Below are positions 17,157 through 64,000 of a stretch of 64,000 nt of DNA, one piece after another; position 1 is the stretch's first letter; every line of letters starts with the position of its first letter. The DNA lies in NCBI RefSeq assembly GCF_963853765.1, contig NC_088854.1:23932001-23996000 (forward strand), in the 5' to 3' direction. Position numbers and translations under genes: made by a program. The stretch is from Magallana gigas. Its lineage: Eukaryota. The notes under the pieces are model-generated. The model was not told where the DNA came from, did no database searches, and was given only the letters and a program-made list of their open reading frames with translations.

Positions 17157-17520
17157 ATTATACTTTCATGTTAAATGCTGAAATCTGATTGTTTTAGACG
17201 CAGTTGGTAATCCATTCTATTACCCTCAGCGTTAGCAACACACTTGGCAACGGGTAACACAACGAATTGTTACATGCGCGTAAATTATGCGCGTACTGTT
17301 CGCCGTTGAATTCACTTCATTTCTATATAAAAGCAGTAAAATTGTCTTTAAAATTAAGACATTCAGTATAATAAAATAAATAGTGCCTGTTTGGGATGGT
17401 AACTGTTGAAATTGACACCCCTCGAAAAACATTATCAACCATTGACGCTTCGCGTCGTTTGACAATGGTTGTCTCGGGGTGTCAATTTCAGCAGTTACCC
17501 TCCCAAACAGGCACTATTTA
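17157..17520. mobile_element. ~365-bp hairpin-ended dispersed element (family HP-1)
   Basis: Homologous copies at 51424-51449+53878-54147, 57706-58072 and 61957-62323. The right ~145 bp is a long inverted repeat (AAATAGTGCCTGTTTGGGA..GACACCCC / GGGGTGTC..TCCCAAACAGGCACTATTT) with a GCTTCGCGTC apex. No real ORF. Confidence 0.85.
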
Positions 17521-35886: not shown

Positions 35887-38800
35887 ATGACATCCCGAAG
35901 TGTACTGACAGTGTCTGAGAGTGTTGAGCAGTCAGAAGGGGAGGGAACCATCATCAAAAGATGCCTGGGTGAAGATGTGGTAAATAACTGTTATTATAGA
36001 TTTACAAATCTGAAGTCAAAGCAGGGTTTCTTAAAGTTTTTACTGTAGTATATGTATTTTTAAAAAGAAAATTAATTAGCGTAATTTTTCCATAAGGTGC
36101 TCTTAAATGTAGGAAAGGTTCTTTTGTTTACAACCTAAAATGTAGGTTTATATTTTCAAAGTCACAACTAAATGAATACAAAGCGTCTTGTCTTCACTAA
36201 ACCTAGCATATTATAACACTTTCTTGTGTTTTTAGACTGATACAGTTGACCCATTTCTAATGTTGGATGAGTTTATAGTTAACCCACCAACAGGATTTCC
36301 AGATCACCCTCATAGAGGATTTGAGCTGGTGAGTATAATGCCCTCTCATCTCAAATACTACTTCATAAGTGATTTAAATGAATTATAAACTAATGGCAAC
36401 TAGAGCTCGAAATGATTAATGCCCAAGTGGTCTTGGACCAGTTATCTGAATATTAAAATTATTTTCTTGAGCAAGAGAAAATTCTCATGGACCAGTAAAA
36501 AAAAGATTATTTTTAGCCCAGTTTTAGAGCACTTGTTGTACAGATATATATATAGATACAGATTTTTTTTATTATTTTTATTAAAGGTGTCATATATCTT
36601 ACAAGGCACTGGTCAGCATGAGGATTTTATGGGACACAAAGGAAAACTGAAGACTGGAGATGTTCAGGTGATTTATACTTATACGTGTACTAGCGATAAA
36701 CATTTACTACAAATCAATGGTATCCATAGGGAAAAAATTTCATAGAGCAACATCTGTTTTCAAATTCGGTCACTATTTAGGTATGTTTTGAAAATAGGTA
36801 GTATTTTGCAAGAGAGCTGTGATTATTCTCAGTGGAAATGTCACCTGATGATAGATTAATATACAGTAGGGTACGTTCTGTTTTACCTCCTGAAGTTTTT
36901 TTCAACATAGTGGTTGACTGCTGGACGAGGCATCATACACTGCGAGTGGTCACATGGTGAGGAGAAAGCCCATGGCCTGCAACTGTGGATTAATCTTGCC
37001 AAGAAAGAGAAAATGCAAGAACCGTCAATCCAAGAGATAGTTGCAGAAAACATCCCTGTTTCATCTAAAGAAGGAATAGAGGTCAAGGTCATCGCTGGAG
37101 AGGCATTTGGTGTCAAGGTTCCCTTCTTTTTTTTATGAAATTCAGGATAGAAGCTAATACTGTTATAAATAACTGCCCTTATGACAGATGTAACATTATT
37201 TTGAGTCCTGTTATTTAATTCCTTTCAAATTGGCAGTCAAATGGCACTTTATTTTATTATTATAATGCCATAATATTAAATGGTAAGCTGATTTGATATG
37301 ACTAATTCCGATTACCGTTAAGTTGTATCAAAAGTCCAATTTTGGCTTAACCAGGCATCCATTATAAGTACATGTATTCATAGTAAACTAATATAAATAA
37401 AAAACATAATGAGGAAGTGCGAAGTTTTCAAAATCAGATTATCTACCTTTGTTGCAGTCCAAGATTCGTACTAGAACTCCTACCCTGTACCTACATTTTA
37501 CAATGAACGAGGGAACCACATTGAATCACCCCATCCCCCAGGGCTGGAACAGTTTTGTCCATGTGCTGTCTGGAAAGGCATTATTTGGTAGGCAAAAGAT
37601 TTTTTAACCTGCAATATCATATATCATAAGTACCCACATGTAACAGAATTTGAAAATGCACTGGTGAACATTTTGCCATAAAATTAGTTTAATGCACAGT
37701 GGTCCTTTCTTTTTAATTTTTTCCATAGGTATCTATATTCTATTTTTTAAGAATCATGTATGAAACAAAGAATTATTCTCCAACTAAATCACTAGTAATG
37801 GATTTTTTTTAACATTTTAGCTATTTAAGAATCAAATTTGAATGAAAAACATTATTTTTTGCTCATACATATTTCAGGCCCTGAAAACAAAGAGAAACTA
37901 GTAAAATCAACTCAAACCGCTATTTTAAGCTCAGAGGGAGAATGTGTGAAAGTACAGAACCAGGTATATACATATATTCATTCGATTATTTATCTGCATC
38001 TGAAATTCTGAATCTTGAAATTTTCTGTATTATACATGTATATATAGCAAGTATATGTTATGTCTTTATTTGCAGTGGTCTGATCCCTGTAGCTTCATTC
38101 TCTTGGCTGGGCAGCCATTAAATGAGCCCGTGGCACAACAAGGTAAATGAGTGATACTGTAGAATTCTTTATTATTTAGTGATATCAAAGTATGAAAACA
38201 TAATATATATTGCTATATAAATGTTATTTTAGAAAGAAGTTTCAACATTAACATTCATTTGAATTTCAAACATATTCCTGCATTATTCATTTTAATCATT
38301 GCAATTTTTTCTGTGTCACAAGCATACAATATACTCTGACTAATACAGTCAAACTTCGTTATCTCGAACTAGATGGGACTGTATAAAAACTTCAAGATAT
38401 CCGAGTATTTGAGATATTGAGAGTAAAATACTTAAAAAATAAGTTGTTGGGACTTACAAATCACTTCGACATATCTATTGTATTCGAGATATCAGTGTTT
38501 GAAATATCGAAGTTCAACTGTATTTCAAAGGATGGATAATTTGTTAGTTTGCATGTGCAATGTGTAGATTCTGACTATTTTGCAATTTGTTTTAAAAAAA
38601 AATAGGCCAAGTGATCAACAAATTACCCATCAGATGTACCTTAAAATATAAAATATGATATTTTTAGCCATAAACATTTTTTTGGAAGTAAAAAATTGAT
38701 ATTTATTTTATGTGAAGAAAAAGTCCAAATATTTTAGTTTTAATATTTGAAAATTTTTCTATTTCTTCATACAGGACTTTTTTTATTTTAAGGAGATTAA

Positions 38801-43778: not shown

Positions 43779-46700
43779 ATGAAGGCTAAGACCGTTTTGA
43801 AGGCTGTTCTCTCCGTGGAGCAGGATGAGGGTGTTGGAGCTCGAGTCAGGCGGAGTGTAGGAAGGCCAGAGGTAGGACATATTTTACGAGATATTGGAAA
43901 CTACTTAAGAGATGAGTGGAAAACATAACTTTTTAGGGATTTAAATGCTGACCCCCTGAATCTTCAAGTCCTCTACCTATTTCTGAATTGTAGTCTTACT
44001 CTGTCTATTCTGACATATTTGTTAACATAGTATGAAGTTGCATTAATGTGCAGCTTATTTTCTGGTATTTTTAACATGTCGTTCGAAGTATGTCATTATT
44101 ATTTTTAGCTCAAAAACTTTGATCCATTCCTGATGCTAGATGAGTTTAAGGGTAAAGCTCCAGGAGGTTTTCCGGATCACCCACACAGAGGCTTTGAAAC
44201 GGTTGGTTTAATCAGCCTAAGTGATTCTAAATAAAACTGTAGTAAAGTAAATGTACTTGGGTATTGTTTACATTTCAAATACAACGAAATTGACCAATCG
44301 TTTTCTTTTCTTCAGAATTTATAATTAAGGAATTTTAAATTTTAACGCAGCATTTTAACACAGCTAATTTCTATCTCAATTTGAGATGTATATAGATTAT
44401 TACATGGCAATTTTTATATCGCATCCTACATATGTATATTAGCCCAAGGTTGCTGTATATCAGCCCTATAGAGCCGTTAATTGTGTAAATTAGGAATCTA
44501 CAGTATGTGAGGAAATCTTATCTCTGAATAATTTTTATTATCAGGTACTTAATACATTTATCAAAAAAGAAAGATAATTTAAAAATTTCCAGTGTACTTT
44601 AATTAAAGCATGAAAGGTTTCTTTTACATGTATATAGGTCACATATATCATAAAGGGAAGTATTCGTCATGAGGATTTCTGTGGACACAAAGGCATAATT
44701 GGAGCTGGAGACCTACAAGTGAGTACATGTACTGGATACTAGGCTTATGTTGTATGCAACTTCAAGTAATTAAAAGCTTTACAGATGAACTAGTAAATAC
44801 TGGATTGGTTTTATAACTGGTGTTAATTGATTAAGAATGATTTTTTAAAAAAAAAAAAAAAAGGCAAGTTTTTTATACAGTGGCTTAATACTCCTGTCTA
44901 ACATTTGACAGTGGATGACCGCTGGCCGAGGAATAGTCCACTGTGAGATGCCACACGGGGAGGGGGAGGTTCATGGCCTTCAGTTGTGGGTCAACCTAGC
45001 TAAGAAATACAAGATGATTGAGCCAGCGTACCAAGAACTTCTAGACAAGGACATCCCAAGGGCAACTAAAGATGGAGTCACAGTCAAGGTCATTGCTGGG
45101 GAAGCATTTGGTATAAAGGTAATAGTTTGTATGTAATGTGGAAAGCTATCTGCAAATATTATAAGTACATACAGTGTTGGTGTTTTATGTTCTTTATTAA
45201 GGTTTGTGTGTCTTTTTAGTCCAAGGTGTACACTCGCACTCCTACAATGTATCTGGATTTTAAGTTGACACCTGGATCTCAACTGGAGCAGCCCATTCCA
45301 GTTGGCTGGAGGTCTTTTCTGTACATTCTCTCTGGAAAGGCGAAGTTTGGTAAGGGTGTGCATATGCAAACTTAAAAATGTCAACAATTGCATTATAGTC
45401 ACATTGCTCATGTGTAACAAATAGTTATCTAAAATATATGCATCTAAATGAATTAGATTGCCATTTAATGTAGTTTGATTATTATTATTTGGTGAATAAT
45501 TGTTTATTTCAAAGTTGAATTGAGCTAGAAATAAAATATTAAAAAGGAATAAACAATGTGATATGAATTTTACTACATAGTATTTGCCAAATTACTGTCC
45601 AAATTAATATTTACATATCTTTTGCAACTGAAATTATATTATCCACAGAACCCAGAGTACTTGTATCTGAATTTTCAACACAATTAAGACATTTTCTTAA
45701 ATTTCAATGACTGTTTCCAGTTATTCTAATTGAGTTACATGTAAATGATGTAATGATTGGATTGATTTCATCTGTTAATGTGGTATTGAAAAGTGTTGGA
45801 CTTGAATTTTTGTCTGTTATTGGTGTTTTTCTGGTTTCAGGACCAACAGGAAACCAGAAGGAGATAGAGGCCCACCACACAGTGACCTTCAACGACGATG
45901 GCGACTCCATAAGTGTGGACAATTCAGTAAGTGGCTATTCCCAAGACAATTCAATGTTGTTTCCTTTAAGTTATTCACAAAACTCTCACTGTATTCATTT
46001 ATTCAAAGATTGCATAAATTATGTTCATGAAAAATGATGTTCAGAACAATTTACTTTATCATAAATTATCACAAAGATGAACTTGTTTTAAAAAAATGAA
46101 ATTGAAATAAAACAGACACATCTTATTGTTCTCTCTTGGATTGAAATGTCAAACTTACATTGGTTTAAACATGAAATGAGACTGCCAGACTTATATTTCT
46201 CTGTCCGAGTGGTGGGATGGTATTCGGAAATATGGCCGATGCTTTGCCTATCTATCTCAACATTTTATCTTTATTTATTACATAGACTATATTCTGTATA
46301 ATTTTTTTTTTTTTGGAATAGTTGCCTTTTGAAATTACTTTTGAATTAGAGTATTGCCCTTTGAAATGACGTCACTTTGTTGTGTCTGGAGTAAAATAAA
46401 ATGGCAGTGTCTAGATTTTTTCAAACCTCCATGGAGGAAAGGGAGAAAACAATTTAATTTAAATAGCAATAAAACATTGAAAGTTAAAAAGGGTGCAGCA
46501 AAAATTTTCAAAGAGTATCTGAAAAGTGAGAATGTTTATTTTGAAGAGTTCTGCTATGTAAATTGGACAAGATGTAAGGCCGCTTTTACATGGATTTGGG
46601 TAGAACATCATTTTTTTTTAATATAGTTTGTCTTACTTGATAGTCCTCTGGAAAACAAAACACTTATTAGGTTGTTACCAACAGCCTACAGATATCAGAT

Positions 46701-49898: not shown

Positions 49899-51040
49899 TT
49901 ATCATTTAATATTTATTCGTTTGATGAGATATCGGCGCTTCTGATTGGTTGAAAAATTTCTTTGATACCTGCATCAATAAAATTTTCGCCGGATCTACTT
50001 TTCTCAACTGCTCTGATCTAACACTATTTATAGAACGGGAATTTCCAAGATAAACACTGTCAACAAAATGTAAAGTTGTGTCTGTTTTATTGTCAGCAAA
50101 CAAAATGCAAACTTGTGAATATAAAAACTTGAAAGTTTAATCTTCAAAAATAAACAAAACACTTTGTTTGATTCACGAAATAGAAAATTAAGCGTCTTCT
50201 CACGATTTCGTCTGCTTGATATCAATCAACATTTACAGCGAGGCTGGCTGTTCCTTTTAAGGATTTCAATATTATAACGAACATATAGGCATATAAACTT
50301 TCACGGTAACACTGCTGTTCAAATTTGGTAACGATAATTTTTAAATTTACACACGTAGATGATCGGTCATCAAAATAAGCGTCGTAAAGAAAAGCTATGA
50401 GTAATATATACATCAACTCCTTCGGTGAATTCCAAGCGGCAGATTTATACCATTTAGGTACATCACTGGCTATCTAGTTACCACAAAGTTTACAAAAGCG
50501 CTTATACATGCTATTCTTTGTCGACATATCAGCTATTTTCGTCCACGATCGCTTTTCCTTGGATCATTGGATGGTTATGTCCAGTTGCATATTCCAGCGA
50601 TCTCACATGAAAACTAGTTTTAATACGAGTTTTTCTGCACAGTGAATGATATCACAAGTTATCGCATGTACTTTCCTTTCGTTTTCAATTCAGCCGGTTC
50701 AGATTTTAACTCACTATTTGTGTTTAATCCATTAAATTCAGCCCAGTAGCTCTGCATCAGCTGAAGGCGAATCCATTTTGAATATTGTTGCTGTTGTTGT
50801 TTTGTATTCATGCGCGCCGCTTCATTTACATTATTTACATTTTTTATCAATGACACATCACATTTTTTTAGTTGAAAATGTTTTATTAAATGATAAGAAA
50901 TGAAGTTAATAATTTTTCTATTGATCGACGTATCAAAGAAAAAATTGACCGGAAAACTTTTTCACGCATTGATGAAGTTTTCCGGTCAATTTTTTCTTTG
51001 ATACGTCGATCAATAGAAAAATTATTATCTTCATTTCTTA
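49899..51040. mobile_element. ~1.1 kb hairpin-ended element (family HP-2), non-coding
   Basis: 13-bp inverted repeats TTATCATTTAATA (49899-49911) / TATTAAATGATAA (50884-50896); CTGATTGG near the left end; ~66-bp-arm hairpin at 50894-51040. Confidence 0.7.
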
Positions 51041-51206
51041 AATGCTTTTAGGGGAATTACTTTGATCCATTCCTTTGGATGGATGAGTTTAAGGATACAG
51101 TTCCTGACCACGTACATGCAGGATATGACGTAGTTAGTTAAAAAATTAGTTTTCATCCTGAATGATTATAAGTTAAGATGTACAGTATAAAGATTGATAT
51201 AAAGTA

Positions 51207-51384
51207 CAGTCAAACTTCGCTATCTCAAACTAGATGGGACTGTTTTAAAACTTTGAGGTATCCGATTATTTGAGATATCGAAGGTAAAATACTTGAAAAG
51301 TAAGTGGTTAGGACTTACTACTAATCACTTCGACATATCCATTGTATTCGAGATATCAGTGCTTGAGATATCGAAGTTTAACTG
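51207..51384. mobile_element. Tc1/pogo-like MITE, second copy
   Basis: TA-CAGTCAAACTTCGCTATCTCAAAC..GAGATATCGAAGTTTAACTG-TA. Confidence 0.85.
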
Positions 51385-51850
51385 TATACTTAAAAAAATC
51401 AATTAAAGAACTGTTAATACATATTATTATACTTTCATGTTAAATACTGTTGTACCATAGCTGTCGCTATATACACCACGTTTTCTTTGTTTAAAAACGT
51501 GGTGTATATATGGCAAACCCACAGTTCTCTATAGCGGGTATATACACCTATAAGAGAGCTTGAAGCTCCGCCCTCTTATATAGTTTAGGGAAAAAACCAC
51601 AGTCATGAATAATTACTCTTTATTAGTGTACAGACAGAAATAAGAATAATTGAGAATTAATAAAGATTGAATCAATAATTCAATACTCTCTCTGTCTCTC
51701 TCAACCGTTTTTACGGCACAAGAACAAAACTCAAAATTAATGATATTTCCCCCTCTATCTCCCCCTCTTTCTCTCTCCCTTTCTCTAAGTATAACAAATC
51801 GTTCACAATGTAATTATTATGAGCACATATTTACTTGAATAACCCTCATC

Positions 51851-53384
51851 TTAAAATCCACCGAAGTTAAATGTGCAATTGGTGAAGATAGGTCCAGAGA
51901 CTGAGTTGTCAACATCCATGGAGCGTGCTGAATCAAGGGAAGCTGTAGTAATCGTAGAGGTAGGCTCATCACTTTTCCTGAAGCGCTTAGGTTCTAACAC
52001 GGTGGATACTTCCTTCATCATGTCGTCTGACGCTCTTTGGTTCGATGGAACGGTGAACCGTGCGGGTCATAATCTCCTGCTCCTCTACCCCCGCCTGATA
52101 CAAAGCCGTCGCACAGGTTCGCTTCCCGGAGTGATTGGTAAAGTTACCACTCAACCCGCCCTCTTCACACATGGATTTCATCATGGTTGACAATTTATTT
52201 ACACCAATACATTGTTTGCTGAATTTTCTACCCTCTAACGCTCTTCTGTAGAACGGTCCAGCCGAATCCCCGTCGTCGGATACACTGAGAACAAGGCAAA
52301 TGTACTCTTTATAAATATTGTACAACTCAATGTCCGAGAATATGTGTTTGATGACTTTTGGCGAAACGTTGCGCTGGTTAAGGCCACCTGCAATTCACAA
52401 AAATTTTAATTGAAATTATCAATGAATACTAGCATTCTGATGCAATTTCCTAATTAATTCTCTTTATTTTAATATTGGAAATGATTTTTATTTACTCAGC
52501 AAATTATCGCTACTTTATTGTTTAACTTTTGCAAATAATAAAAATTTTACCTTTACATGTTTTATTGGTCCGCCCTTTAAAAATGATCAACGGGCGATCA
52601 TTATCATTCTCATCATGCAGTTCAAATTGATTTATCGCCAGATTTCGGTGTTCGTCAATTCCTCGTAGGCCGAACAACTTACAGTTGTAGAAGAAGACCG
52701 AATATAACATCGACTTGGAAGTGGAATTTCCTAAAATGTTCTTCTCCCAAAGGCATTTTTCGTCGTTTTCTGACAACGGCTCGGCTTGTCTTTTGACGAT
52801 TCCAATGCCTTGAGACGTCAGTTCAGACATTTTGGCGCTCAAAGCCTGACGAAAACCTTGGAAACAAATATTTTTTTCATCCAAAAAGTACTTCCCATTT
52901 TCACGCAGATGCCTTAACAGACCCACGCACAGCTGGTAAAGGGATCTGGGTGGATATGGGTTTCCATCCTTTCGTCTGACTTCCAAGACAAATCTCGTCA
53001 TTAAGTTATTCATCTCAGTTTCGTTCGTTATCTTTTCCAAGTCAGGAATAAAGGCCCCAGTAATTTCCATTCGATATTTTCTCCATTCTAGAAAAGTACT
53101 CAGACTCCAATTAGTGTTTTTACGCGTGTTCTTGCTTTCAAACGACTTTTTAATAGAATATATATCTCCTCCTCTTCAACCAATGGCCCAAACCGATTTT
53201 TGTCTTCTTCATTGGTATCAAACAAATCATCCAGCCCTTCAAACATCTCAAAATCTGCAAATTCAGCTTCCTCCACTTTGTAAACTTCTACTGTTTGTGT
53301 AAGTGACATTTCATTTAAGGATTCCCAAGCTTCGGCAATATCCAAAGCCTGAGACAACGCAAAATCCAGTCCGTCTTCCTCCAT
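51851..53384 (-). pseudogene. Tyrosine recombinase of the CryptonA/ZMYM/QRICH1/KCTD1 (DUF3504) type, 2 exons, inactivated
   Basis: Motifs NTRKNTNWS..EW, FVLEVRRKDGNPYPPRSLY, FGLRGIDEH, KT.KG|GLNQR across a GT-AG intron (52388-52550), PFYRR, IGVNKL, FTNHSGKRTCATALY, RTVHRS, C-terminal FTNCTFNF. One frameshift near 53140; a frameshifting deletion after HRSIE removes the segment expected to hold the catalytic Tyr. Confidence 0.85.
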
Positions 53385-53609
53385 GTTTTACCCGGAATAA
53401 CCACCCGAACACGTGTCTTTTTGTGCGATACCTTATGCCAGTTCAATCGTGCGTGACAAATCGATTGACAATAGTAAACATTGGCTTCTGTGTCTTATTT
53501 GTTATTTAGGTCAGAAAAATAATAGTAACTAATGTGAATGTCTTGAGAAAATTAAAAAAGAAATTGATTGTATCTATAATACGTTAAATAATAGAATTGC
53601 ACATATTCT

Positions 53610-53625
53610 CTCCCTCTCACTCACT

Positions 53626-53681
<56 letters not shown>
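53610..53681. repeat. (CT)n microsatellite inside the Crypton-type element
   Basis: Direct reading. Confidence 0.9.
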
Positions 53682-53684
<3 letters not shown>

Positions 53685-55039
53685 CGCTATATTTAGTAAC
53701 AACATTTTGGTGTAGCTATGGTACAAGCAAGTTACCGATATGCTTTTCTATTGGTTTGCTTTAGATACCCGATGACATTTTGAAACGCCCACTCGGGGCG
53801 TTGCCCCTCGTGGGCGTTTCAAAATTGTCATCGGGTATCTAAAGCAAACCAATAGAAAAGTATACGGTAACTATAACAAATCTGATTGGTTTAGACGCAG
53901 TTGATAATCCGTTCTATTACCCTCAGCCTTAGCAACACACTTGGCAACGGGTAACACAACGAATTGTTACATGCGCGTAAATTATGCGCGTACGGTTCGC
54001 CGTAAAATTAACATCATTTCTATATAAAGGCAGTAAAATTTTCTCTAAAATTAAGACATTCAGTATTAATAAAAATTCGCGTCGGTTGACAATGGTTTTC
54101 TCGGGGTGTCAATTTCAACAGTTACCCTCCCAAGCAGACACTATTTATATAATGTATTGTGCAAGTGTGTGTGATATACTGAGTACTGCATAATGTTAGT
54201 CAAGGCGTATTAACTCCTTAGTTCAGTTGGAAGAGCGTAGATTTAGCATTGTTGCACATGGTCATACCCTTAATTTGAAACAGAAAAATTGTATTTATAG
54301 GTCACATACGTCATCAAAGGAAGTATACACTATGAAGATATATGTGGTTACAAAGGCATATTTCAGCTGGAGATGTACATATAAATATTCAATTCTTAGA
54401 CTAGAAATATGGGCTAATTCATCTTGGGTGATCAAGTATTTTTATCATTTATCAGATCGATAGAAAATTTTGCTCAGGTAATGTAGGTGAAATAAATGTG
54501 ATCAAGTACAGTCATGTTCCACCTTGCACATAATGTATCATAGGATGNNNNNNNNNNNNNNNNNNNNNNNNNNNNNNNNNNNNNNNNNNNNNNNNNNNNN
54601 NNNNNNNNNNNNNNNNNNNNNNNNNNNNNNNNNNNNNNNNNNNNNNNNNNNNNNNNNNNNNNNNNNNNNNNNNNNAAACAGATATTTAGCAATATATATA
54701 TATCCATGATGCAGTGTATATAAATATATTCACAATTAAAGACACCATAACGTAAAATAAGGCTTTTAATATACTGTAGTTCCCAACAAATGTAGATCAG
54801 CACAAAGAGAAATTCAACAACAAAAACAATATAGTGCTGAAAAGCCCATTTGACGTCAACATGAAACAGTTCATTGAGATTTGAGTAACTTGTTGTAGTA
54901 AGCCAAAACTAAACCGCATTCCCCACAGCGGCGGATGATTCTAACCAAATGTATACAATCTGTTTGCATTTTATTTCGTGATTCCGTTATTTCTAATCCT
55001 TGTCATATTTGTCGGATAAAGATACCATTCGCAGATGGC

Positions 55040-56731
55040 CTACGTTTTAGGAAGACACATATTTTTGACAGCTTTCCGATCAGACTTGCCCGTAGATGTT
55101 CTTGGTAGATCATTAAGAAACACAATATGCCTGGGTACGTAGACATTTTCCGTAAACTTTGCATCTTCTGTGATGTTCAGTTCTCGTTTGATAAACTCAC
55201 GCAGGGATTCTTCGGTCAAGGTCGATCCGTCCACTCTGACAACTGCAGCACATGGAACATCATCCGCGTGACTTTGGTCCTTGATGGCGAAGACCACCAC
55301 CTCCATAACATCCGGGTGCCTTTTTACGTATGCCTCAATGAAAGACGGTGTAATTTTGTTTCCTGAAATTTGCATCACATCAGACACTCTACCCAATACC
55401 TCCAGATGTCCCGCTGAATTGATTTTACAGAAGTCGTCTGCTTTATACCAACCAGAAGAGTCAAGGACTATCGCTGTTTTCTCAGGGTCATTTAGATATC
55501 CCTTAAATTGAGGGGACGAGCGTATGTAAAGCTCTCCTTTCGAACCTCGAGGAACAACGAAGCCATCCTTTCCAACCACCTTTAATTCCATACCTGCTAG
55601 AGGTAACATGCCCATAATTTCATCCCCCCGCGGTTCAGATGAACGATAAATCTTTCCTGCAATCATACCAGCTTCTGTGCTACCATAAAGGGCTGAAAAG
55701 GCATCATATACCTTACCTTTGCCCTCGAAACAAATTGGCGGAATAGGTTGGCCTGATACAATAACTGATTGAAATTTCCAAAGAAAGTCTTCTGATCCCG
55801 TCATTTCTAGGTAGAAAGGAACTACAAAAAATCCACAGTCAGGTTTTTCCTTATGAATGATGGTCTTGGTGAATTGTACAATCTCTGAATATGATGACAA
55901 CGCCAGCGTGGTTTTCTGAGTAACTCTTGTTCCGCCAACTACCATTACAAATCCTGGGTACCCGCCTTGCCAGAAGAAGGGTCGATCATTGTAATAAATG
56001 GTACCACTGTCTTTCTTTATATCCACATCTAAAAGAAAGGCATAATCTTCACCATATTTGACAAATTCGTAATGGCTTTTTTCGACCACTTTCGGAAATC
56101 CCGTACTTCCAGAGGTTTGAAGCACAGCTGCTTTATCTTCAGGGTCAATTTCAGGCAGTTCAGTGTTGTCATCACAAAAAATACTGGCTATTGTTGGAAA
56201 TCCTTCATGTGATCCTATCGGAGAAAGTGCTATCAGCCATTTCAAAGCAGGGATATCAGATTGCAATACACCTCCAGTGTTTTGATCAACTTGAGCTATT
56301 CGTTGCATTACTTCCCAATGAGAATCTCTGAGTCCCGGATCAAAGAGGATTGCCTTGCATCCGCCGACTTTGGTCAGAGTTCTTTTGATACCATCTCCAC
56401 TTTTGTCGTGGAACGGAAAGTATACCGGGCAAGCCTTGGCAAATAGAACCCCATAGGTACCGACCATCCATTCAGACGTGTTGTTTCCTCCGATTCCGAC
56501 ATAGTCCCCTCCCTTTACACCAATACGAGTAAGCCCCTTTGCCAACTTGACGGCATCGTTGTAGAATTTACCGTAAGTTATCGAGGTTCTGGTCCCGTCG
56601 TGGCTGTAACAAACAATGGCTTCTCTATCTGGTTGAATGGTTCCCCATTTCTCCAAAAGTTTAGTAAGCGTAGTATACGGTGCAGCGGAGATCCTCTCGG
56701 ACCGTAGATAACTGCCTATGTCCATATCCAT
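55040..56731 (-). CDS. AMP-binding (ANL superfamily) acyl-CoA synthetase-like enzyme, intronless, copy 1
   Basis: P-loop LQTSGSTGFPK, YGSTEAG, GWYKADD (atypical for TGD), hinge GRVSDVMQISGNK, PRTSTGK. First ATG at 56731 (the track start 56752 is TTG and overlaps a likely TTTTGCAG acceptor). Confidence 0.92.
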   Translation of the reverse strand: MDMDIGSYLRSERISAAPYTTLTKLLEKWGTIQPDREAIVCYSHDGTRTSITYGKFYNDAVKLAKGLTRIGVKGGDYVGIGGNNTSEWMVGTYGVLFAKACPVYFPFHDKSGDGIKRTLTKVGGCKAILFDPGLRDSHWEVMQRIAQVDQNTGGVLQSDIPALKWLIALSPIGSHEGFPTIASIFCDDNTELPEIDPEDKAAVLQTSGSTGFPKVVEKSHYEFVKYGEDYAFLLDVDIKKDSGTIYYNDRPFFWQGGYPGFVMVVGGTRVTQKTTLALSSYSEIVQFTKTIIHKEKPDCGFFVVPFYLEMTGSEDFLWKFQSVIVSGQPIPPICFEGKGKVYDAFSALYGSTEAGMIAGKIYRSSEPRGDEIMGMLPLAGMELKVVGKDGFVVPRGSKGELYIRSSPQFKGYLNDPEKTAIVLDSSGWYKADDFCKINSAGHLEVLGRVSDVMQISGNKITPSFIEAYVKRHPDVMEVVVFAIKDQSHADDVPCAAVVRVDGSTLTEESLREFIKRELNITEDAKFTENVYVPRHIVFLNDLPRTSTGKSDRKAVKNMCLPKT

Positions 56732-57705
56732 CTGCTCTGCAAAATTCACCAAATAGTATTTAGGTTTTCAAAACAGGTCAAGACTATAGCCAGTTCGAGT
56801 AATGACTGTTTTTTAGAGCAGTGTCGCTTAAAATTGTGTCATTTCAGCGTGCACTGATTAGCATGCGTTAGTTCAAGCATGAAGGCAAAATGAAACACAC
56901 AATTAAATGATATATGTATATATATAATTACATTACGAACGTTTTGCATTTAGCACCGCCCATTCTCAACCTAGAAAATGGACAAGTTCGTGTTTATCTG
57001 TATTCACTGACTATAACCCAAGACCAAAGTAGTTTACATGATAGCAAAGTTTACATGATACATAAATATTCTTACCTCCTGCTAGATTGTAAGAAAATCA
57101 CTGGCTTACAGCAGTCACATGGAGACAATGTATAATCCATACATAGTAAAAAAATATTGGCCCCTTTGCTTTCTCCGATTAAAACTTGTAATATTATTTC
57201 CATTGTTATATTTACTTTTTATCATTAAAAAAAGGCAGTTGGTAAGATATAATCGCTACACGACTTGTAGTTGACCTAATATGGTGTATACATGGTCAGT
57301 AAATTTACTGACCATGTATATGTATAAACCATATTAGGTCAACTACAAACCATGTACATGTATCTCCAAGTGCCTATCAAGGTTACAATCAAGAGGCCCT
57401 TGGACCTTAATGGTCACCTGATCAGTAATACCGAAATATTAGTTTAAAAAGGGGGCATCTCATGGGAGAAAGCGGTTTAAGTTTTGAAACGTGTGCCCAA
57501 TCCAAATTGTATTCATGTGCAATAAAAATATTTTCAAATCAAATTAATTATTTTGAAAATTTTAAGCTAACATTTTTAAGAATTATGCTTAATGTTATTA
57601 CACCAGCTACTGGGCATACTGTTGCTATCCCAACACTTTTGTCTAGAAATCAACAATATAACAAAGTTGCAAGCACCCAGTTCAAATTATTTTATAAACT
57701 ACATT

Positions 57706-58072
57706 GTTATACTTTCATGTTGAATACTGAAATCTGATTGGTTAAGACGCAGTTAATAATATTTACTATTACCCTCAGCGTTAGCAACGCACTTGGCAAC
57801 GGGTAACATTAAAAAATGTTACATGCGCGAAAATTATGCGCGTACGGTTCGCTGTAGAATTCACGTTATTCCTATATAAAAGCAGTAAAATTTTCTTAAA
57901 ATTTTTAAAAAAGACATTCAGTATAACAAAATAAATAGTGCCTGTTTGGGAGGATAACAGTTGAAATTGACACCCCTCGAAAACCATTGTCAACCTCCGC
58001 TTCGCGTCGGTTGACAATGGTTTTCTCGGGGTGTCAATTTCAACTGTTACCCTCCCAAACAGGCACTATTTA
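57706..58072. mobile_element. HP-1 hairpin-ended element copy
   Basis: Homologous to 17157-17520, hairpin intact. Confidence 0.85.
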
Positions 58073-59290
58073 TATAATATGACATGTTTAATATCCAAAA
58101 TTGTGCGCTCCTAACAATTTGAACACTTTTTCCATTACTTTCAGCCACATTAATCTGGTCTTTAGAAATAAAATAGTAATTTTAAATACATTACATTGTC
58201 AGAATTTTGTGAGAGGGGAAGAAGTATTGTTACATTTTAAACATCTTACCGTTAATGTATCGCTCTGTAGCAATAAAACACTACAAAGGACTAACGACGC
58301 GTTTAGACTGAGTGAAGGCCGGTCATCTACCCATGAATCCGGACAGAGGAGTAACAACCGGAAAATGGAAACTGACAAATTGGTTTAAAAAAAATACCAG
58401 GGTCCTTGACAATAAATACATGACTGTGCATGTGTTTATTTACATGACATATCAGTATACACAAACATCGTGATGAGAAAAATACAATGCATTGTAAATT
58501 AATTTAATAAAAAAAAAACAACAACGGTCGGTTGTTCTTCTTATGATTTTTTGACGTGTTCTTGTGTAAATTTTCCGGTGTACAAGTATGTGTATGTGTC
58601 TGTGGTTAAGCACTGAATATTCTCATTCTCACTTGATTGAATAAGATATGAGCCAACTTTGCACTGTTTAGTTTGTTTGAAAGTAAAGCAAGATAAGTGA
58701 AAATAAATATGTTTATAATGACAGCTTGTGCAGNNNNNNNNNNNNNNNNNNNNNNNNNNNNNNNNNNNNNNNNNNNNNNNNNNNNNNNNNNNNNNNNNNN
58801 NNNNNNNNNNNNNNNNNNNNNNNNNNNNNNNNNNNNNNNNNNNNNNNNNNNNNNNNNNNNNNNNNNNNNNNNNNNNNNNNNNNNNNNNNNNAATATTGAA
58901 CAGACAACAGATATTGTTTAGCAATATATTTATCCATTATGCAGTGTATATAAACATATTCACAATTAATGACACCATAACGTAAAATAAGGCTTTTACT
59001 ATACTGTAATTCCCAACAAATGTATAATTCAAACATGACAAACAGATCAGCACAAAGAGAAATTCAACAACAAAAAACAATATAGTGCTGAAAAGCCCAT
59101 TTGACGTCAACATGAAACAGTTCATTGAGATTTGAGTAACTTGTTGTAGTAAGCCAAAACTAAACCGCATTCCCCACAGCGGCGGATGATTCTAACCAAA
59201 TTTATACAATCTGTTTGCATTTTATTTCGTGATTCCGTTATTTCTAATCCTTGTCATATTTGTCGGATAAAGATACCATTCGCAGATGGC

Positions 59291-60982
59291 CTACGTTTTA
59301 GGAAGACACATATTTTTGACAGCTTTCCGATCAGACTTGCCCGTAGATGTTCTTGGTAGATCATTAAGAAACACAATATGCCTGGGTACGTAGACATTTT
59401 CCGTAAACTTTGCATCTTCTGTGATGTTCAGTTCTCGTTTGATAAACTCACGCAGGGATTCTTCGGTCAACGTCGATCCGTCCACTCTGACAACTGCAGC
59501 ACATGGAACATCATCCGCGTGACTTTGGTCCTTGATGGCGAAGACCACCACCTCCATAACATCCGGGTGCCTTTTTACGTATGCCTCAATGAAAGACGGT
59601 GTAATTTTGTTTCCTGAAATTTGCATCACATCAGACACTCTACCCAATACCTCCAGATGTCCCGCTGAATTGATTTTACAGAAGTCGTCTGCTTTATACC
59701 AACCAGAAGAGTCTAGGACTATCGCTGTTTTCTCAGGGTCATTTAGATATCCCTTAAATTGAGGGGACGAGCGTATGTAAAGCTCACCTTTCGAACCTCG
59801 AGGAACAACGAAGCCATCCTTTCCAACCACCTTTAATTCCATACCTGCTAGAGGTAACATGCCCATAATTTCATCCCCCCGCGGTTCAGATGAACGATAA
59901 ATCTTTCCTGCAATCATACCAGCTTCTGTGCTACCATAAAGGGCTGAAAAGGCATCATATACCTTACCTTTGCCCTCGAAACAAATTGGCGGAATAGGTT
60001 GGCCTGATACAATAACTGATTGAAATTTCCAAAGAAAGTCTTCTGATCCCGTCATTTCTAGGTAGAAAGGAACTACAAAAAATCCACAGTCAGGTTTTTC
60101 CTTATGAATGATGGTCTTGGTGAATTGTACAATCTCTGAATATGATGACAACGCCAGCGTGGTTTTCTGAGTAACTCTTGTTCCGCCAACTACCATTACA
60201 AATCCTGGGTACCCGCCTTGCCAGAAGAAGGGTCGATCATTGTAATAGATGGTACCACTGTCTTTCTTTATATCCACATCTAAAAGAAAGGCATAATCTT
60301 CACCATATTTGACAAATTCGTAATGGGTTTTTTCGACCACTTTCGGAAATCCCGTACTTCCAGAGGTTTGAAGCACAGCTGCTTTATCTTCAGGGTCAAT
60401 TTCAGGCAGTTCAGTGTTGTCATCGCAAAAAATACTGGCTATTGTTGGAAATCCTTCATGTGATCCTATCGGAGAAAGTGCTATAAGCCATTTCAAAGCA
60501 GGGATATCAGATTGCAATACACCTCCAGTGTTTTGATCAACTTGAGCTATTCGTTGCATTACTTCCCAATGAGAATCTCCGAGTCCCGGATCAAAGAGGA
60601 TTGCCTTGCATCCGCCGACTTTGGTCAGGGTTCTTTTGATACCATCTCCACTTTTGTCGTGGAACGGAAAGTATACCGGGCAAGCCTTGGCAAATAGAAC
60701 CCCATAGGTACCGACCATCCATTCAGGCGTGTTGTTTCCTCCGATTCCGACAAAATCCCCTTCCTTTACACCTATACGAATAAGTCCCTTTGCCAACTTG
60801 ACGGCATTGTTGTAGAATTTACCGTAAGTTATCGAGGTTCTGGTCCCGTCGTGGCTGTAACAAACAATGGCTTCTCTATCTGGTTGAATGGTTCCCCATT
60901 TCTCCAAAAGTTTAGTAAGCGTAGTATACGGTGCAGCGGAGATCCTTTCGGACCGTAGATAACTGCCTATGTCCATATCCAT
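59291..60982 (-). CDS. AMP-binding acyl-CoA synthetase-like enzyme, copy 2
   Basis: Same motifs; 7 amino-acid differences from copy 1 in the provided translations. Confidence 0.92.
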   Translation of the reverse strand: MDMDIGSYLRSERISAAPYTTLTKLLEKWGTIQPDREAIVCYSHDGTRTSITYGKFYNNAVKLAKGLIRIGVKEGDFVGIGGNNTPEWMVGTYGVLFAKACPVYFPFHDKSGDGIKRTLTKVGGCKAILFDPGLGDSHWEVMQRIAQVDQNTGGVLQSDIPALKWLIALSPIGSHEGFPTIASIFCDDNTELPEIDPEDKAAVLQTSGSTGFPKVVEKTHYEFVKYGEDYAFLLDVDIKKDSGTIYYNDRPFFWQGGYPGFVMVVGGTRVTQKTTLALSSYSEIVQFTKTIIHKEKPDCGFFVVPFYLEMTGSEDFLWKFQSVIVSGQPIPPICFEGKGKVYDAFSALYGSTEAGMIAGKIYRSSEPRGDEIMGMLPLAGMELKVVGKDGFVVPRGSKGELYIRSSPQFKGYLNDPEKTAIVLDSSGWYKADDFCKINSAGHLEVLGRVSDVMQISGNKITPSFIEAYVKRHPDVMEVVVFAIKDQSHADDVPCAAVVRVDGSTLTEESLREFIKRELNITEDAKFTENVYVPRHIVFLNDLPRTSTGKSDRKAVKNMCLPKT

Positions 60983-61956
60983 CTGCTCTGCAAAATTCAC
61001 CAAATAGTATTTAGGTTTTTAAAACAGGTCAAGACTATAGCCAGTTCGAGTAATGACTGTTTTTTAGAGCAGTGTCGCTTAAAATTGTGTCATTTCAGCG
61101 TGCACTGATTAGCATGCGTTAGTTCAAGCATGAAGGCAAAATGAAACACACAATTAGATGATATATGTATCTATGTAATTACATTACGAACGTTTTGCAT
61201 TTAGCTCCGCCCATTCTCAACCTAGAAAATGGACAAGTTTGTGTTTATCTGTATTCACTGACTATAACCCAAGACCAAAGTAGTTTACGTGATAGCAAAG
61301 TTTACATGATATATAAATATTCTTACCTCCTGCTAGATTGTAAGAAAATCACTGGCTTACAGCAGTCATGTGCAGACAATGTATAATCCATACATAGTAA
61401 AAAAATATTGGCCCCTTTGCTTTCTCCGATTAAAACTTGTAATATTATTTCCATTGTTATATTTACTTTTTATCATTAAAAAAAGGCAGTTGGTAAGATA
61501 TAATCGCTACACGACTGTAGTTGACCTAATATGGTTTATACATGGTCAGTAAATTTACTGACCATGTATATGTATAAACCATATTAGGTCAACTACAAAC
61601 CATGTACATGTATCTCCAAGTGCCTATCAAGGTTACAATCAAGAGGCCCTTGGACCTTAATGGTCACCTGATCCGTAATACCGAAATATTAGTTTAAAAA
61701 GGGGGCATCTCATGGGAGAAAGCGGTTTAAGTTTTGAAACTTGTGCCCAATCCCAATTGTATTCATGTGCAATAAAAATATTTTCAAATCAAATTAATTA
61801 TTTTGAAAATTTTAAGCTAACATTTTTAAGAATTATGCTTAATGTTATTACACCAGCTACTGGGCATACTGTTGCTATCCCAACACTTTTGTCTAGAAAT
61901 CAACAATATAACAAAGTTGCAAGCACCCCAGTTCAAATTATTTTATAAACTACATT

Positions 61957-62323
61957 GTTATACTTTCATGTTGAATACTGAAATCTGATTGGTTAAGACG
62001 CAGTTAATAATATTTACTATTACCCTCAGCGTTAGCAACGCACTTGGCAACGGGTAACATTAAAACATGTTACATGCGCGAAAATTATGCGCGTACGGTT
62101 CGCTGTAGAATTCACGTTATTCCTATATAAAAGCAGTAAAATTTTCTTAAAATTTTTATAAAAGACATTCAGTATAACAAAATAAATAGTGCCTGTTTGG
62201 GAGGATAACAGTTGAAATTGACACCCCTCGAAAACCATTGTCAACCTCCGCTTCGCGTCGGTTGACAATGGTTTTCTCGGGGTGTCAATTTCAACTGTTA
62301 CCCTCCCAAACAGGCACTATTTA
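61957..62323. mobile_element. HP-1 hairpin-ended element copy
   Basis: Duplicate of 57706-58072. Confidence 0.85.
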
Positions 62324-63003
62324 TATAATATGACATGTTTAATATCCAAAATTGTGCGCTCCTAACAATTTGAACACTTTTTCCATTACTTTCAGCCACA
62401 TGAATCTGGTCTTTAGAAATAAAATAGTAATTTTAAATACATTACATTGTCAGAATTTTGTGAGAGGGGAAGAAGTATTGTTACATTTTAAACATCTTAC
62501 CGTTAATGTGTCGCTCTTTAGCAATAAAACACTACAAAGGACTAACGACGCGTTTAGACCGAGTGAAGGCCGGTCATCTACCCATGAATCCGGACAGAGG
62601 AGTAACAACCGGAAAATGGAAACTGACAAATTGGTTTAAAAAAAAATACCAGGGTCCTTGACAATAAATACATGACTGTGCATGTGTTTATTTACATGAC
62701 ATATCAGTATACACAAACATCGTGATGAGAAAAATACAATGCATTGTAAATTAATTTAATAAAAAAACAACAACAGTCGGTTGTTTTTCTTATGATTTTT
62801 GACGTGTTCTTGTGTAAATTTTCCGGTGTACAAGTATGTGTATGTGTCTGTGGTTAAGCACTGAATATTCTCATTCTCACTTGATTGAATAAGATATGAG
62901 CCAACTTTGTCTTTGCACTGTTTAGTTTGTTTGAAAGTAAAGCAAGATAAGTGAAAATAAATATGTTTATAATGACAGCTTGTGCAGCCACACGTTCAGT
63001 CCA

Positions 63004-63007
<4 letters not shown>

Positions 63008-63075
<68 letters not shown>

Positions 63076-63080
63076 ATATA
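63008..63080. repeat. (TA)n / (TAGATA)n microsatellite at a duplication-unit junction
   Basis: Direct reading; occupies the position equivalent to the N gap at 58734-58891. Confidence 0.9.
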
Positions 63081-63500
63081 GATATATTCCTGTTTGTAAA
63101 GAATATTGAACAAACAACAACAATTGTTTAGCAATATATTTATCCATTATGCAGTGTATATAAACATATTCACAATTAATGACACCATAACGTAAAATAA
63201 GGCTTTCACTATACTGTAATTCCCAACAAATGTATAATTCAAACATGACAAACAGATCAGCACAAAGAGAAATTCAACAACAAAAAACAATATCGTGCTG
63301 AAAAGCCCATTTGACGTCAACATGAAACAGTTCATTGAGATTTGAGTAACTTGTTGTAGTAAGCCAAAACTAAACCGCATTCCCCACAGCGGCGGATGAT
63401 TCTAACCAAATTTATACAATCTGTTTGCATTTTATTTCGTGATTCCGTTATTTCTGATCCTTGTCATATTTGTCGGATAAAGATACCATTCGCAGATGGC

Positions 63501-64000
63501 CTACGTTTTAGGAAGACACATATTTTTGACAGCTTTCCGATCAGACTTGCCCGTAGATGTTCTTGGTAGATCATTAAGAAACACAATATGCCTGGGTACG
63601 TAGACATTTTCCGTAAACTTTGCATCTTCTGTGATGTTCAGCTCTCGTTTGATAAACTCACGCAGGGATTCTTCGGTTAAGGTCGATCCGTCCACTCTGA
63701 CAACTGCAGCACATGGAACATCATCCGCGTGACTTTGGTCTTTGATTGCGAAGACCACCACCTCCATAACATCCGGGTGCCTTTTTACGTATGCCTCAAT
63801 GAAAGAAGGAGTAATTTTGTTTCCTGAAATTTGCATCACATCAGACACTCTACCCAATACCTCCAGATGTCCCGCTGAATTGATTTTACAGAAGTCGTCT
63901 GCTTTATACCAACCAGAAGAGTCTAGGACTATCGCTGTTTTCTCAGGGTCATTTAGATATCCCTTAAATTGAGGGGACGAGCGTATGTAAAGCTCACCTT
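63501..64000 (-). CDS. AMP-binding acyl-CoA synthetase-like enzyme, copy 3 (3' part; runs off the window)
   Basis: C-terminal sequence matches copies 1 and 2 (GRVSDVMQISGNK..PRTSTGKSDRKAVKNMCLPKT*). Confidence 0.9.
   Translation of the reverse strand, partial: GELYIRSSPQFKGYLNDPEKTAIVLDSSGWYKADDFCKINSAGHLEVLGRVSDVMQISGNKITPSFIEAYVKRHPDVMEVVVFAIKDQSHADDVPCAAVVRVDGSTLTEESLREFIKRELNITEDAKFTENVYVPRHIVFLNDLPRTSTGKSDRKAVKNMCLPKT

Follow-up and report, generated by a model that had tools for sequence, protein, structure and literature searches.

Nested hairpin-ended elements in the oyster genome and the probable end structure of a large clade of Crypton-type tyrosine-recombinase transposons

A 64,000-nucleotide stretch of the Magallana gigas genome (hereafter, the window; RefSeq assembly GCF_963853765.1, contig NC_088854.1, positions 23,932,001 to 23,996,000) contains a nest of three transposable elements at 49901-54151: a non-coding element (HP-2), an old copy of a second non-coding family (HP-1), and a tyrosine-recombinase (YR) element (family A) that splits the HP-1 copy in two. 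The features of these elements, together with the three other HP-1 copies in the window, are as follows (window coordinates).

49901-51041 (+), HP-2, non-coding, 1141 bp, with 5′ repeat 49901-49911, 3′ repeat 50884-50894, hairpin 50894-51040, a 1-nt tail, and a 2-bp (AT) boundary ambiguity
51424-51449 (+), 5′ piece of the old HP-1 copy, cut off by the YR element; its terminal TTGT reads TTAT here
51450-53877 (+), dead copy of a DUF3504/CryptonA-type YR transposon (family A), 2428 bp
51450-51462 (+), 5′ terminal inverted repeat of family A, with small hairpins nested just inside it (ATAGC/GCTAT, and 17-nt arms at 51468-51510)
51851-52387 (-), YR exon 2, the catalytic C-terminal half, with a 14-bp deletion near 52028/52029 that removes the catalytic Tyr
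52388-52550, the intron
52551-53384 (-), YR exon 1 (acidic N-terminus, QRICH1/SAM-like domain, start of DUF3504), with a 2-bp insertion (about 53162) and a 7-bp deletion (52889)
53620-53681 (+), (CT)n microsatellite, variable in length between copies
53714-53726 (+), 3′ partner of the terminal inverted repeat, ending in ACAA
53730-53872 (+), long hairpin with base AGTTAC../..GTAACT and cap C-TC-G, 5-bp GC stem, triloop, C-TC-G
53873-53877 (+), 5-nt tail ATAAC, the 3′ end of the element, directly after which lies the crossover point
53878-54151 (+), 3′ piece of the old HP-1 copy, from which the left hairpin arm is deleted
57704-58076 (+), intact young HP-1 copy, 373 bp, with 5′ repeat 57704-57713, 3′ repeat 57910-57919, hairpin 57921-58073, and tail ATA
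61955-62327 (+), HP-1 copy produced by a 4.25-kb tandem segmental duplication of the copy at 57704, so that these two are not independent insertions
17155-17524 (+), older, diverged HP-1 copy

All three elements share one build, in which a short inverted repeat sits at the extreme 5′ end and its partner lies just before a 140-150-nt hairpin that is followed by a 1-5-nt A/T-rich tail. The original prediction, that three elements of unrelated sequence share such an asymmetric design and that the recombinase-coding one is inserted into another without a target-site duplication (TSD), was confirmed. The 13-bp inverted repeats of family A are 100% complementary, and its hairpin, present on one side only, folds at -74 kcal/mol (z = -20.9); the HP-2 hairpin has z = -22.1. 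None of 200 shuffles folds as well as any of the three hairpins, and all three families are multi-copy with constant ends and unrelated flanks, which excludes chance. Two details were revised. The terminal repeat of HP-2 is 11 bp rather than the 13 bp first proposed, as the longer repeat includes two flank T that pair by chance in this copy; and while the 8-bp core proposed for HP-1 is real, its true terminal repeat is 10 bp at the very 5′ end.

Element boundaries were established from copy alignments and from sequence reads and contigs. At least 40 genomic copies of HP-2 were found at 92-98% identity, from 969 first-look candidates, and its ends are constant in 11 copies. Contigs from two other oysters, in two studies, join 49900 directly to 51042, representing the empty-site allele. 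HP-1 has at least 40 genomic copies at 99-100% identity. The 5′ piece of the split HP-1 copy was delimited by eye in alignment with intact copies, while the loss of its hairpin arm is reflected in a joint on opposite strands at 54076/54084 and in loose ends that carry the missing arm. The YR element sits exactly between 51449 and 53878, with no duplication and no loss: more than 1300 reads in each of two raw-read runs, coming from other HP-1 copies, join these two bases with zero ambiguous letters. Four full-length and at least seven internally deleted copies of family A share constant ends (TTGTACC... to ...CTATAAC) and have unrelated flanks; the deleted copies (e.g., joint 52101|53396) keep the last part of the YR coding sequence, indicating that they derive from the coding element. 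No TSD was observed in 9 family A, 4 family B (described below), 38 HP-1, and 11 HP-2 junction pairs.

The encoded protein was assigned by searching the two exons separately, which returned Pfam matches to DUF3504 (3e-14), QRICH1 (1e-11), and Phage_integrase (5e-5). A profile search hit the recombinase XerA (E = 0.0024) with the His, His, and Tyr positions aligned. Tyr and Arg I are invariant in 14 relatives, but the family carries Lys where recombinases have the second catalytic Arg. The YR exons are the only ORFs in the 2428-bp element with a family match; no reverse transcriptase, DDE transposase, or Rep was found in it. The copy in the window is dead, a point absent from the original prediction: other copies read ..TGHRS..VRQY.. 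where the 14-bp deletion removes the Tyr, and carry 7 letters behind 52889. No copy of family A is fully intact.

Other YR loci were also sampled, using upstream pieces only. Long palindromes were found upstream of the YR gene at 23 of the 32 other YR loci sampled; they are concentrated in the closer relatives and mostly follow the same rule (..ACAA, 2-3 nt, hairpin with a C-TC-G cap, ATAAC tail). All 10 further YR loci in the first batch have a 100-145-nt palindrome at this position, as do 11 of 20 in the second batch. Family B, whose YR is 41% identical, comprises four copies at 99.4-99.7% identity with open reading frames; it shows the same layout and the identical 3′ terminus GTAACTATAAC, although its hairpin sequence is unrelated. 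The cap (C-TC-G on both arms, read as tandem G.A plus a GNA-type loop on the gene-sense strand) is present in the families inspected and, with the same strand polarity, in HP-1, whereas HP-2 lacks both the cap and the TTGT/ACAA ends. Two related hairpins (L067 and L071) differ at 7 of 44 pairs, of which five changes are compensatory and none is one-sided, although compensatory changes in a palindrome can also arise by arm-to-arm conversion. Within family A there is too little variation to detect covariation, and the changes seen are single and uncompensated. The joined ends fold into one continuous hairpin with a small internal loop at the junction.

Target sites were compared for each family. 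At 38 HP-1 junctions, the flanks read R-T-A-A-Y-A at -12..-7 (A at -7 in 32 of 38) and A-T-R-T at +1..+4 (T at +2 in 38 of 38), mirroring the half-sites of HP-1 itself; the consensus of flanks from hundreds of reads shows the same motif. At 11 HP-2 junctions, T-R-A at -10..-8 (A at -8 in 10 of 11) and ATCA at +1..+4 are again inverted copies of the terminal repeat. Microhomology was seen only for HP-2 (ATCA) and HP-1 (TGTTA). HP-1 also forms head-to-tail tandems and inserts, in both orientations, into a perfect palindrome inside other HP-1 copies. In contrast, no clear palindromic target was apparent for families A and B, for which only 8 and 4 sites were compared.

These results are best explained, with a probability of roughly 0.7, by a nest of three DNA transposons of one mechanistic class, in which the coding member is a dead Crypton-type (DUF3504/CryptonA-like) element whose asymmetric ends are the native end structure of a large clade of such transposons: a terminal repeat starting TTGT at the very 5′ end, its partner ending ACAA, 2-3 nt, a 100-150-nt hairpin with a conserved cap, and a 3-5-nt tail, usually ATAAC. 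In this view, when the two ends are joined, in an excised circle or in a folded single strand, the repeats would become inverted recombinase half-sites flanking a short spacer (8 nt in families A and B) from which the long palindrome protrudes, and strand exchange would take place at the boundary between the spacer and the 5′ repeat. Because the hairpin is always on the same side and no target bases are duplicated or replaced, the reaction is most likely a single strand exchange resolved by replication, as with integron attC sites or the CTX phage. HP-1 and HP-2 would be non-autonomous elements that use the same kind of enzyme and choose pseudo-palindromic targets imitating their own half-sites, a geometry that fits a recombinase rather than a Helitron. 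The anatomy, the exact ends, the absence of a TSD, the recurrence of the design across YR families, the target logos, and the polymorphism of HP-2 were demonstrated directly, whereas the role of the YR as the transposase, the joined or folded intermediate, the one-strand exchange, and the dependence of HP-1 and HP-2 on a YR are inferences. No circle or single-strand intermediate was observed, and reads joining the 3′ end to the 5′ end cannot be told apart from the head-to-tail tandem copies that exist in the genome. The signs of a folded single-strand substrate are only indirect: the strand-specific cap, the fixed side of the hairpin, and the single crossover point. No coding master with HP-1 or HP-2 ends was found when both were compared by BLAST to the 33 sampled YR loci and their upstream regions, and DNA searches of the genome are saturated by the short copies. 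A match of RSINSVR in HP-2 to the catalytic motif lies at the expected place and strand but is not significant, as 44 of 300 shuffles reach its score.

The interpretation offered in the original prediction was partly supported. Its assignment of the coding element to Crypton-type YR transposons and its inference of TSD-free integration held, as did the view that the hairpin belongs to the element, and HP-1 and HP-2 most likely belong to the same mechanistic system, given the same build and recombinase-type palindromic targets. No evidence was found for self-priming by the hairpin, and the suggestion that these elements target each other's recombination sites was not supported and is very unlikely. 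Although one nested case occurs here, and HP-1 does insert repeatedly into its own palindrome, the family A insertion lies 26 nt inside HP-1, outside both its true terminal repeat and its palindromic hot spot, at a site that does not resemble family A half-sites; moreover, no HP-1 or HP-2 sequence was found in the about 1.5-kb flanks of 12 other family A loci. That the hairpins are separate foldback elements or MITEs, adjacent by chance in a region that is a pile-up of repeats (an unrelated TA-flanked MITE lies at 51208-51387), had been named beforehand as a refuting outcome and is itself refuted: in every copy of each family the hairpin stands at the same distance from the same ends, the flanks diverge only beyond the short tail, and the HP-2 empty site removes repeat, body, and hairpin as one unit.

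The more serious alternative, overlooked in the original prediction but considered unlikely here, is that HP-1 and HP-2, and possibly the vehicles of the YR genes too, are Helitron2/Helentron-type rolling-circle elements (HINEs) moved by a Rep/helicase supplied in trans, with the YR gene as a captured passenger or accessory. The end layout is practically identical to the published Helitron2/Helentron design (Bao and Jurka 2013, PMC3627910; Thomas et al. 2014, PMC4067079): a T at the 5′ end, asymmetric terminal inverted repeats with the 5′ repeat 0-2 nt from the end and a nested small hairpin, an internal microsatellite, a 3′ repeat just upstream of a 3′ palindrome, no TSD, and tandem head-to-tail copies. 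Hairpins are, in addition, a general feature of HUH transposons (preprint 10.1101/2022.12.15.520654), and oyster HINEs (Cg_HINE) are abundant and have no identified autonomous partner (PMC7492417). This rival therefore stays open for HP-1 and HP-2, whose coding masters were not found. However, YR genes 36-51% identical keep open frames and the same position and orientation relative to the hairpin across many families, which a passenger would not; the elements are 2.0-2.4 kb, with no room for Rep/helicase, and none is present in the elements described here. The HP-1 and HP-2 targets are two inverted half-sites around a 5-7-nt spacer rather than a TT or AT dinucleotide, the insertion at this locus is between G and A, and family A junction bases are variable, although about half of the 3′ flanks of YR families do begin with TT. 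The hairpin arms are 45-73 nt, as compared to the 5-20-nt palindromes described for Helentrons (whole palindromes of 100-150 nt rather than 10-40 nt), and HP-1 shares TTGT/ACAA and the strand-specific cap with the YR families.

Among characterized systems, the family A element resembles CryptonA transposons (Goodwin 2003; Kojima and Jurka 2011, PMC3212892) in its single YR gene, here with one intron, its DUF3504 and QRICH1 domains, its lack of a TSD, and its abundant non-autonomous derivatives, while HP-2 shows a 2-4-bp identity between the element's end and the target, the "short direct repeat" hallmark. The published description, however, states that animal Cryptons have no terminal repeats, direct or inverted, but only 4-6-bp direct repeats from microhomology, and the 2026 Glomhopper paper repeats the absence of terminal repeats; here, asymmetric 10-13-bp terminal inverted repeats, a long capped hairpin, and a conserved tail sharply define the ends, a difference in the description of the ends and not in the enzyme. 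The resemblance to integron attC sites with IntI and to CTX phage attP with XerCD, in which bacterial tyrosine recombinases act on folded single strands, is an analogy only: an imperfect hairpin presents two paired boxes separated by an unpaired spacer, crossover is at one fixed point beside a paired box without duplication, strand-specific structural features are present, and one-strand exchange would explain the fixed side of the hairpin, but the profile match to IntI4 is weak (E = 0.17), the hosts are animals, and the hairpins are much longer. IS200/IS605 elements (HUH Y1 transposases) likewise have subterminal hairpins, no TSD, and insertion next to a short specific sequence, but with hairpins at both ends, a different enzyme class, and a one-sided tetranucleotide target, as opposed to one hairpin and a two-sided inverted target here.

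Cryptons are the least understood class of eukaryotic DNA transposons, with ends described as featureless and no defined recombination site or intermediate. The exact ends, conserved end grammar, target logos, and young family B reported here provide a defined mini-element and recombinase that can be taken straight to a transposition or in vitro cleavage assay. The coincidence with Helitron2/Helentron ends implies either convergence of two unrelated enzyme classes on hairpin-based end recognition or mis-assignment of some bivalve "Helitron-like" non-autonomous repeats, either of which affects repeat annotation in molluscs. A more far-reaching possibility, which remains tentative and is somewhat less likely than not, is that a large clade of animal Cryptons recombines through a core site split in two by a long, strand-specifically capped hairpin, such that the two half-sites come together only when the ends are joined or folded and only one strand is exchanged, as at attC sites; many abundant hairpin-ended non-coding repeats of bivalves that look like Helitron2/Helentron derivatives would then really be Crypton-dependent. 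A eukaryotic recombinase acting on folded DNA could also interest tool builders.

Relatives of the YR protein occur in scallop, mussel, pearl oyster, and amphioxus. In a scan of metagenome sequences, only part of the loci carry a hairpin, and capped hairpins stand upstream of distant YR genes in two contigs (L097 and L099).

Between 49901 and 54151 of the window lie three mobile elements of the Pacific oyster, as follows.

49901-51041: HP-2, a non-coding element
51424-51449 plus 53878-54151: an old HP-1 copy, split by the following element
51450-53877: a 2428-bp element (family A) carrying, on the minus strand, a two-exon gene for a tyrosine recombinase (YR)

When searched exon by exon rather than as a joined protein, the YR gene matches DUF3504, QRICH1 and Phage_integrase. 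To determine whether the original prediction, which described short inverted repeats together with one long terminal hairpin in all three elements, reflected the actual sequence, each of its items was re-examined, and every one was found to be present, so that the observation is confirmed. The 13-bp repeats of the coding element are perfect, and the three hairpins fold at -71 to -74 kcal/mol with z-scores of -21 to -22. The coding element sits exactly between G 51449 and A 53878, as had been proposed; in each of two raw-read runs, more than 1300 reads from other HP-1 copies join these two bases with no ambiguous letter. Four refinements were nevertheless required. Two of the four HP-1 copies in the window are products of a 4.25-kb segmental duplication, of which at least three tandem units (98-100% identity), each carrying an HP-1 copy, occupy 54694-63582. 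The split HP-1 copy lacks its left hairpin arm. The true terminal repeat of HP-1 is 10 bp at the extreme 5′ end (57704-57713), paired with 57910-57919, while the 8-bp core originally assigned as its inverted repeat is a second, internal partial copy. Finally, HP-2 starts at 49901, so its terminal repeat is 11 bp rather than the 13 bp first reported.

All three elements are real mobile units. In the 564-Mb, 29-contig oyster assembly, family A has 4 full-length and at least 7 internally deleted copies, which share constant ends (TTGTACC... to ...CTATAAC), have unrelated flanks and lack target-site duplications (TSDs). The deleted copies keep the last part of the YR coding sequence, indicating that they derive from the coding element and not the other way round. 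HP-1 has at least 40 copies at 99-100% identity, from 357 first-look candidates, and HP-2 has at least 40 copies at 92-98% identity, from 969 candidates. For HP-2 at this very locus, contigs of two oysters from two studies join 49900 directly to 51042, which represents an empty allele; the insertion is therefore polymorphic, precise and free of a TSD. HP-2 is inserted about 10 nt upstream of an exon-like segment (..TTTTAG|GGG.., 51042-51104) that recurs twice more in the window (36217-36288 and 44090-44161), which places it in the pyrimidine tract and 3′ splice region of a host gene with repeated exons. Because the insertion is polymorphic, it could affect splicing in carriers. The recombinase gene of the family A copy in the window is dead, having a 2-bp insertion, a 7-bp deletion and a 14-bp deletion that removes the catalytic Tyr. 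The other three full-length copies also carry defects; one has both exons open, but with Tyr in place of the His of the HxxR-like box and with a damaged hairpin.

The genome holds well over 100 paralogous YR loci, and comparison among them showed that the build belongs to the recombinase elements. A family only 41% identical in protein (family B) has four copies at 99.4-99.7% identity with open frames and the same layout, and its last 11 bases, GTAACTATAAC, are identical to those of family A, although its hairpin sequence is unrelated. Among further YR loci, sampled as short pieces upstream of the gene, all 10 regions in a first batch carry a 100-145-nt palindrome, as do 11 of 20 in a second batch. 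In the tally made here, the palindromes concentrate in loci at least about 36% identical to family A and are mostly absent from the distant (25-32%) group. The grammar is constant: a repeat ending ACAA, 2-3 nt, the hairpin, and then a tail reading ATAAC, ATTAC or AATAC; the 5′ end therefore starts with TTGT. At locus L130 (genome G000, contig C8:37753570-37754180), the 3′ tail of a YR element is followed by 7 nt identical to the predicted 5′ end of that family (TTGTATC), so that the palindrome runs across the junction, suggesting either a target that mimics the half-site or a remnant of a tandem junction.

The hairpin tip carries C-TC-G on both arms around a short GC stem and a small loop, which on the gene-sense strand reads as tandem G.A pairs, often with a GNA loop. 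HP-1 has the same cap with the same strand polarity, including the GCGAAGC motif, which is known as an unusually stable DNA mini-hairpin, and its hairpin (57921-58073) carries a second C-TC-G / C-TC-G mismatch module in mid-stem in addition to the one at its tip. Two related hairpins differ at 7 of 44 pairs; five of the changes are compensatory and none is one-sided, although arm-to-arm conversion in palindromes could contribute to this pattern. Two metagenome contigs also carry capped palindromes (L097, 51-164; L099, 2158-2302), with a C-GA-G cap, GC stem and GAA or GCA loop, upstream of distant YR genes only 35-38% identical to the oyster protein, while other contigs do not.

These anatomical features suggest a model for the recombination site. 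Joining the 3′ end to the 5′ end gives one continuous hairpin in which the terminal repeats pair and are followed by a small internal loop (3 nt on one side, the ATAAC tail on the other) and then by the long stem, whose base is conserved. Read as duplex DNA with the palindrome extruded, the same site consists of two inverted half-sites separated by an 8-nt spacer, with GGTACAA and TTGTACC as the half-sites of family A. This is the canonical form of a YR core site, with the hairpin sitting inside the spacer, and in this view the crossover lies at the boundary between the spacer and the right half-site. The hairpin is always at the same end, and no target bases are duplicated or replaced, from which a single strand exchange resolved by replication is inferred, as at integron attC sites or with the CTX phage. 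While the ends, the hairpins, the absence of TSDs and the target patterns were observed directly in the sequences, the joined or extruded site is a model built on them, and the one-strand exchange is inference only. The model predicts that mobility would depend on the catalytic Tyr, the hairpin and the cap strand, and that cleavage would be directly 5′ of the TTGT repeat.

To examine target choice, the sequences flanking the insertions were compared with the ends of the elements themselves. For HP-1, 38 junctions show R-T-A-A-Y-A at -12 to -7 and A-T-R-T at +1 to +4; the target is thus an inverted repeat (about GTAACA, spacer, TGTTAC) that mirrors the half-sites of HP-1 in the same register as its own junction. 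The consensus of read ends from hundreds of copies shows the same motif. HP-1 also inserts in both orientations into a perfect palindrome of this kind inside other HP-1 copies (GTAACATT-AAAAAA-TGTTAC), and it forms head-to-tail tandems (..TATATA|TTGTTATAC..), as seen at the genomic loci L039 (G000 C5:53685663-53689030) and L044. Likewise, 11 HP-2 junctions show T-R-A at -10 to -8 and ATCA at +1 to +4, again inverted copies of its own terminal repeat. A two-sided inverted target with a 5-7-nt spacer is what a dimeric site-specific recombinase needs, whereas Helitrons and Helentrons are described with AT or TT dinucleotide targets. Families A and B show no clear motif with the few sites available.

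The layout is, however, exactly the one published for Helitron2 and Helentron elements and their non-autonomous HINEs, and oyster HINEs still lack a known autonomous partner. For the coding families, this alternative is considered unlikely, since YR genes 36-51% identical keep open frames, position and orientation relative to the hairpin, and the elements have no room for Rep/helicase. For HP-1 and HP-2 it cannot be excluded, because no coding master was found among the sampled loci. A YR-like remnant in HP-2 is not significant. HP-1 shares TTGT/ACAA and the cap with the YR families, while HP-2 shares only the layout and the target geometry. The original interpretation, in which HP-1 and HP-2 were non-autonomous members of the system of the recombinase element, the hairpin end was functional and the elements might target each other's recombination sites, is supported only in part. 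The proposed mutual targeting is not supported: the insertion is 26 nt inside HP-1, away from its repeat and its hot spot, the site does not resemble family A half-sites, and the flanks of 12 other family A loci hold no HP sequence. Nor does anything speak for self-priming, which had been suggested as one role of the hairpin.

The encoded protein is a CryptonA/DUF3504-type YR. Its profile matches QRICH1 (2.7e-16) and the recombinase XerA (0.0024), with His, His and Tyr aligned. In the alignment of this YR family, around HSGK(R)TCAT, the position of the second catalytic Arg (aligned to the R of the XerA HxLR) is a nearly invariant Lys, and the next residue is Arg in some members and Val in others. 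Relatives occur in scallops, mussels, pearl oysters and amphioxus. The literature examined states that animal Cryptons have no terminal repeats (PMC3212892, PMC13465315), and full-text searches, which did not extend to the Repbase and Dfam libraries, found no paper describing hairpin ends in Cryptons. The coding elements characterized here are Crypton transposons that differ from that description in having a defined, hairpin-bearing end structure, for which the proposed mechanism is testable.

The window also holds other repeats. An unrelated small element with about 23-bp terminal inverted repeats (CAGTCAAACTTCG..), flanked by TA, lies between HP-2 and HP-1 at 51208-51387; its read depth is about 17-21x against 1-3x for unique sequence, and it looks like a Tc1/mariner-type MITE. 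A tandem array of about 5 units with a period near 436 bp (60-93% identity) is located at 11268-13133. In addition, dispersed duplicated blocks (71-90% identity), two of them 19.9 kb apart, are shared between 3529-9889 and 27533-29796.
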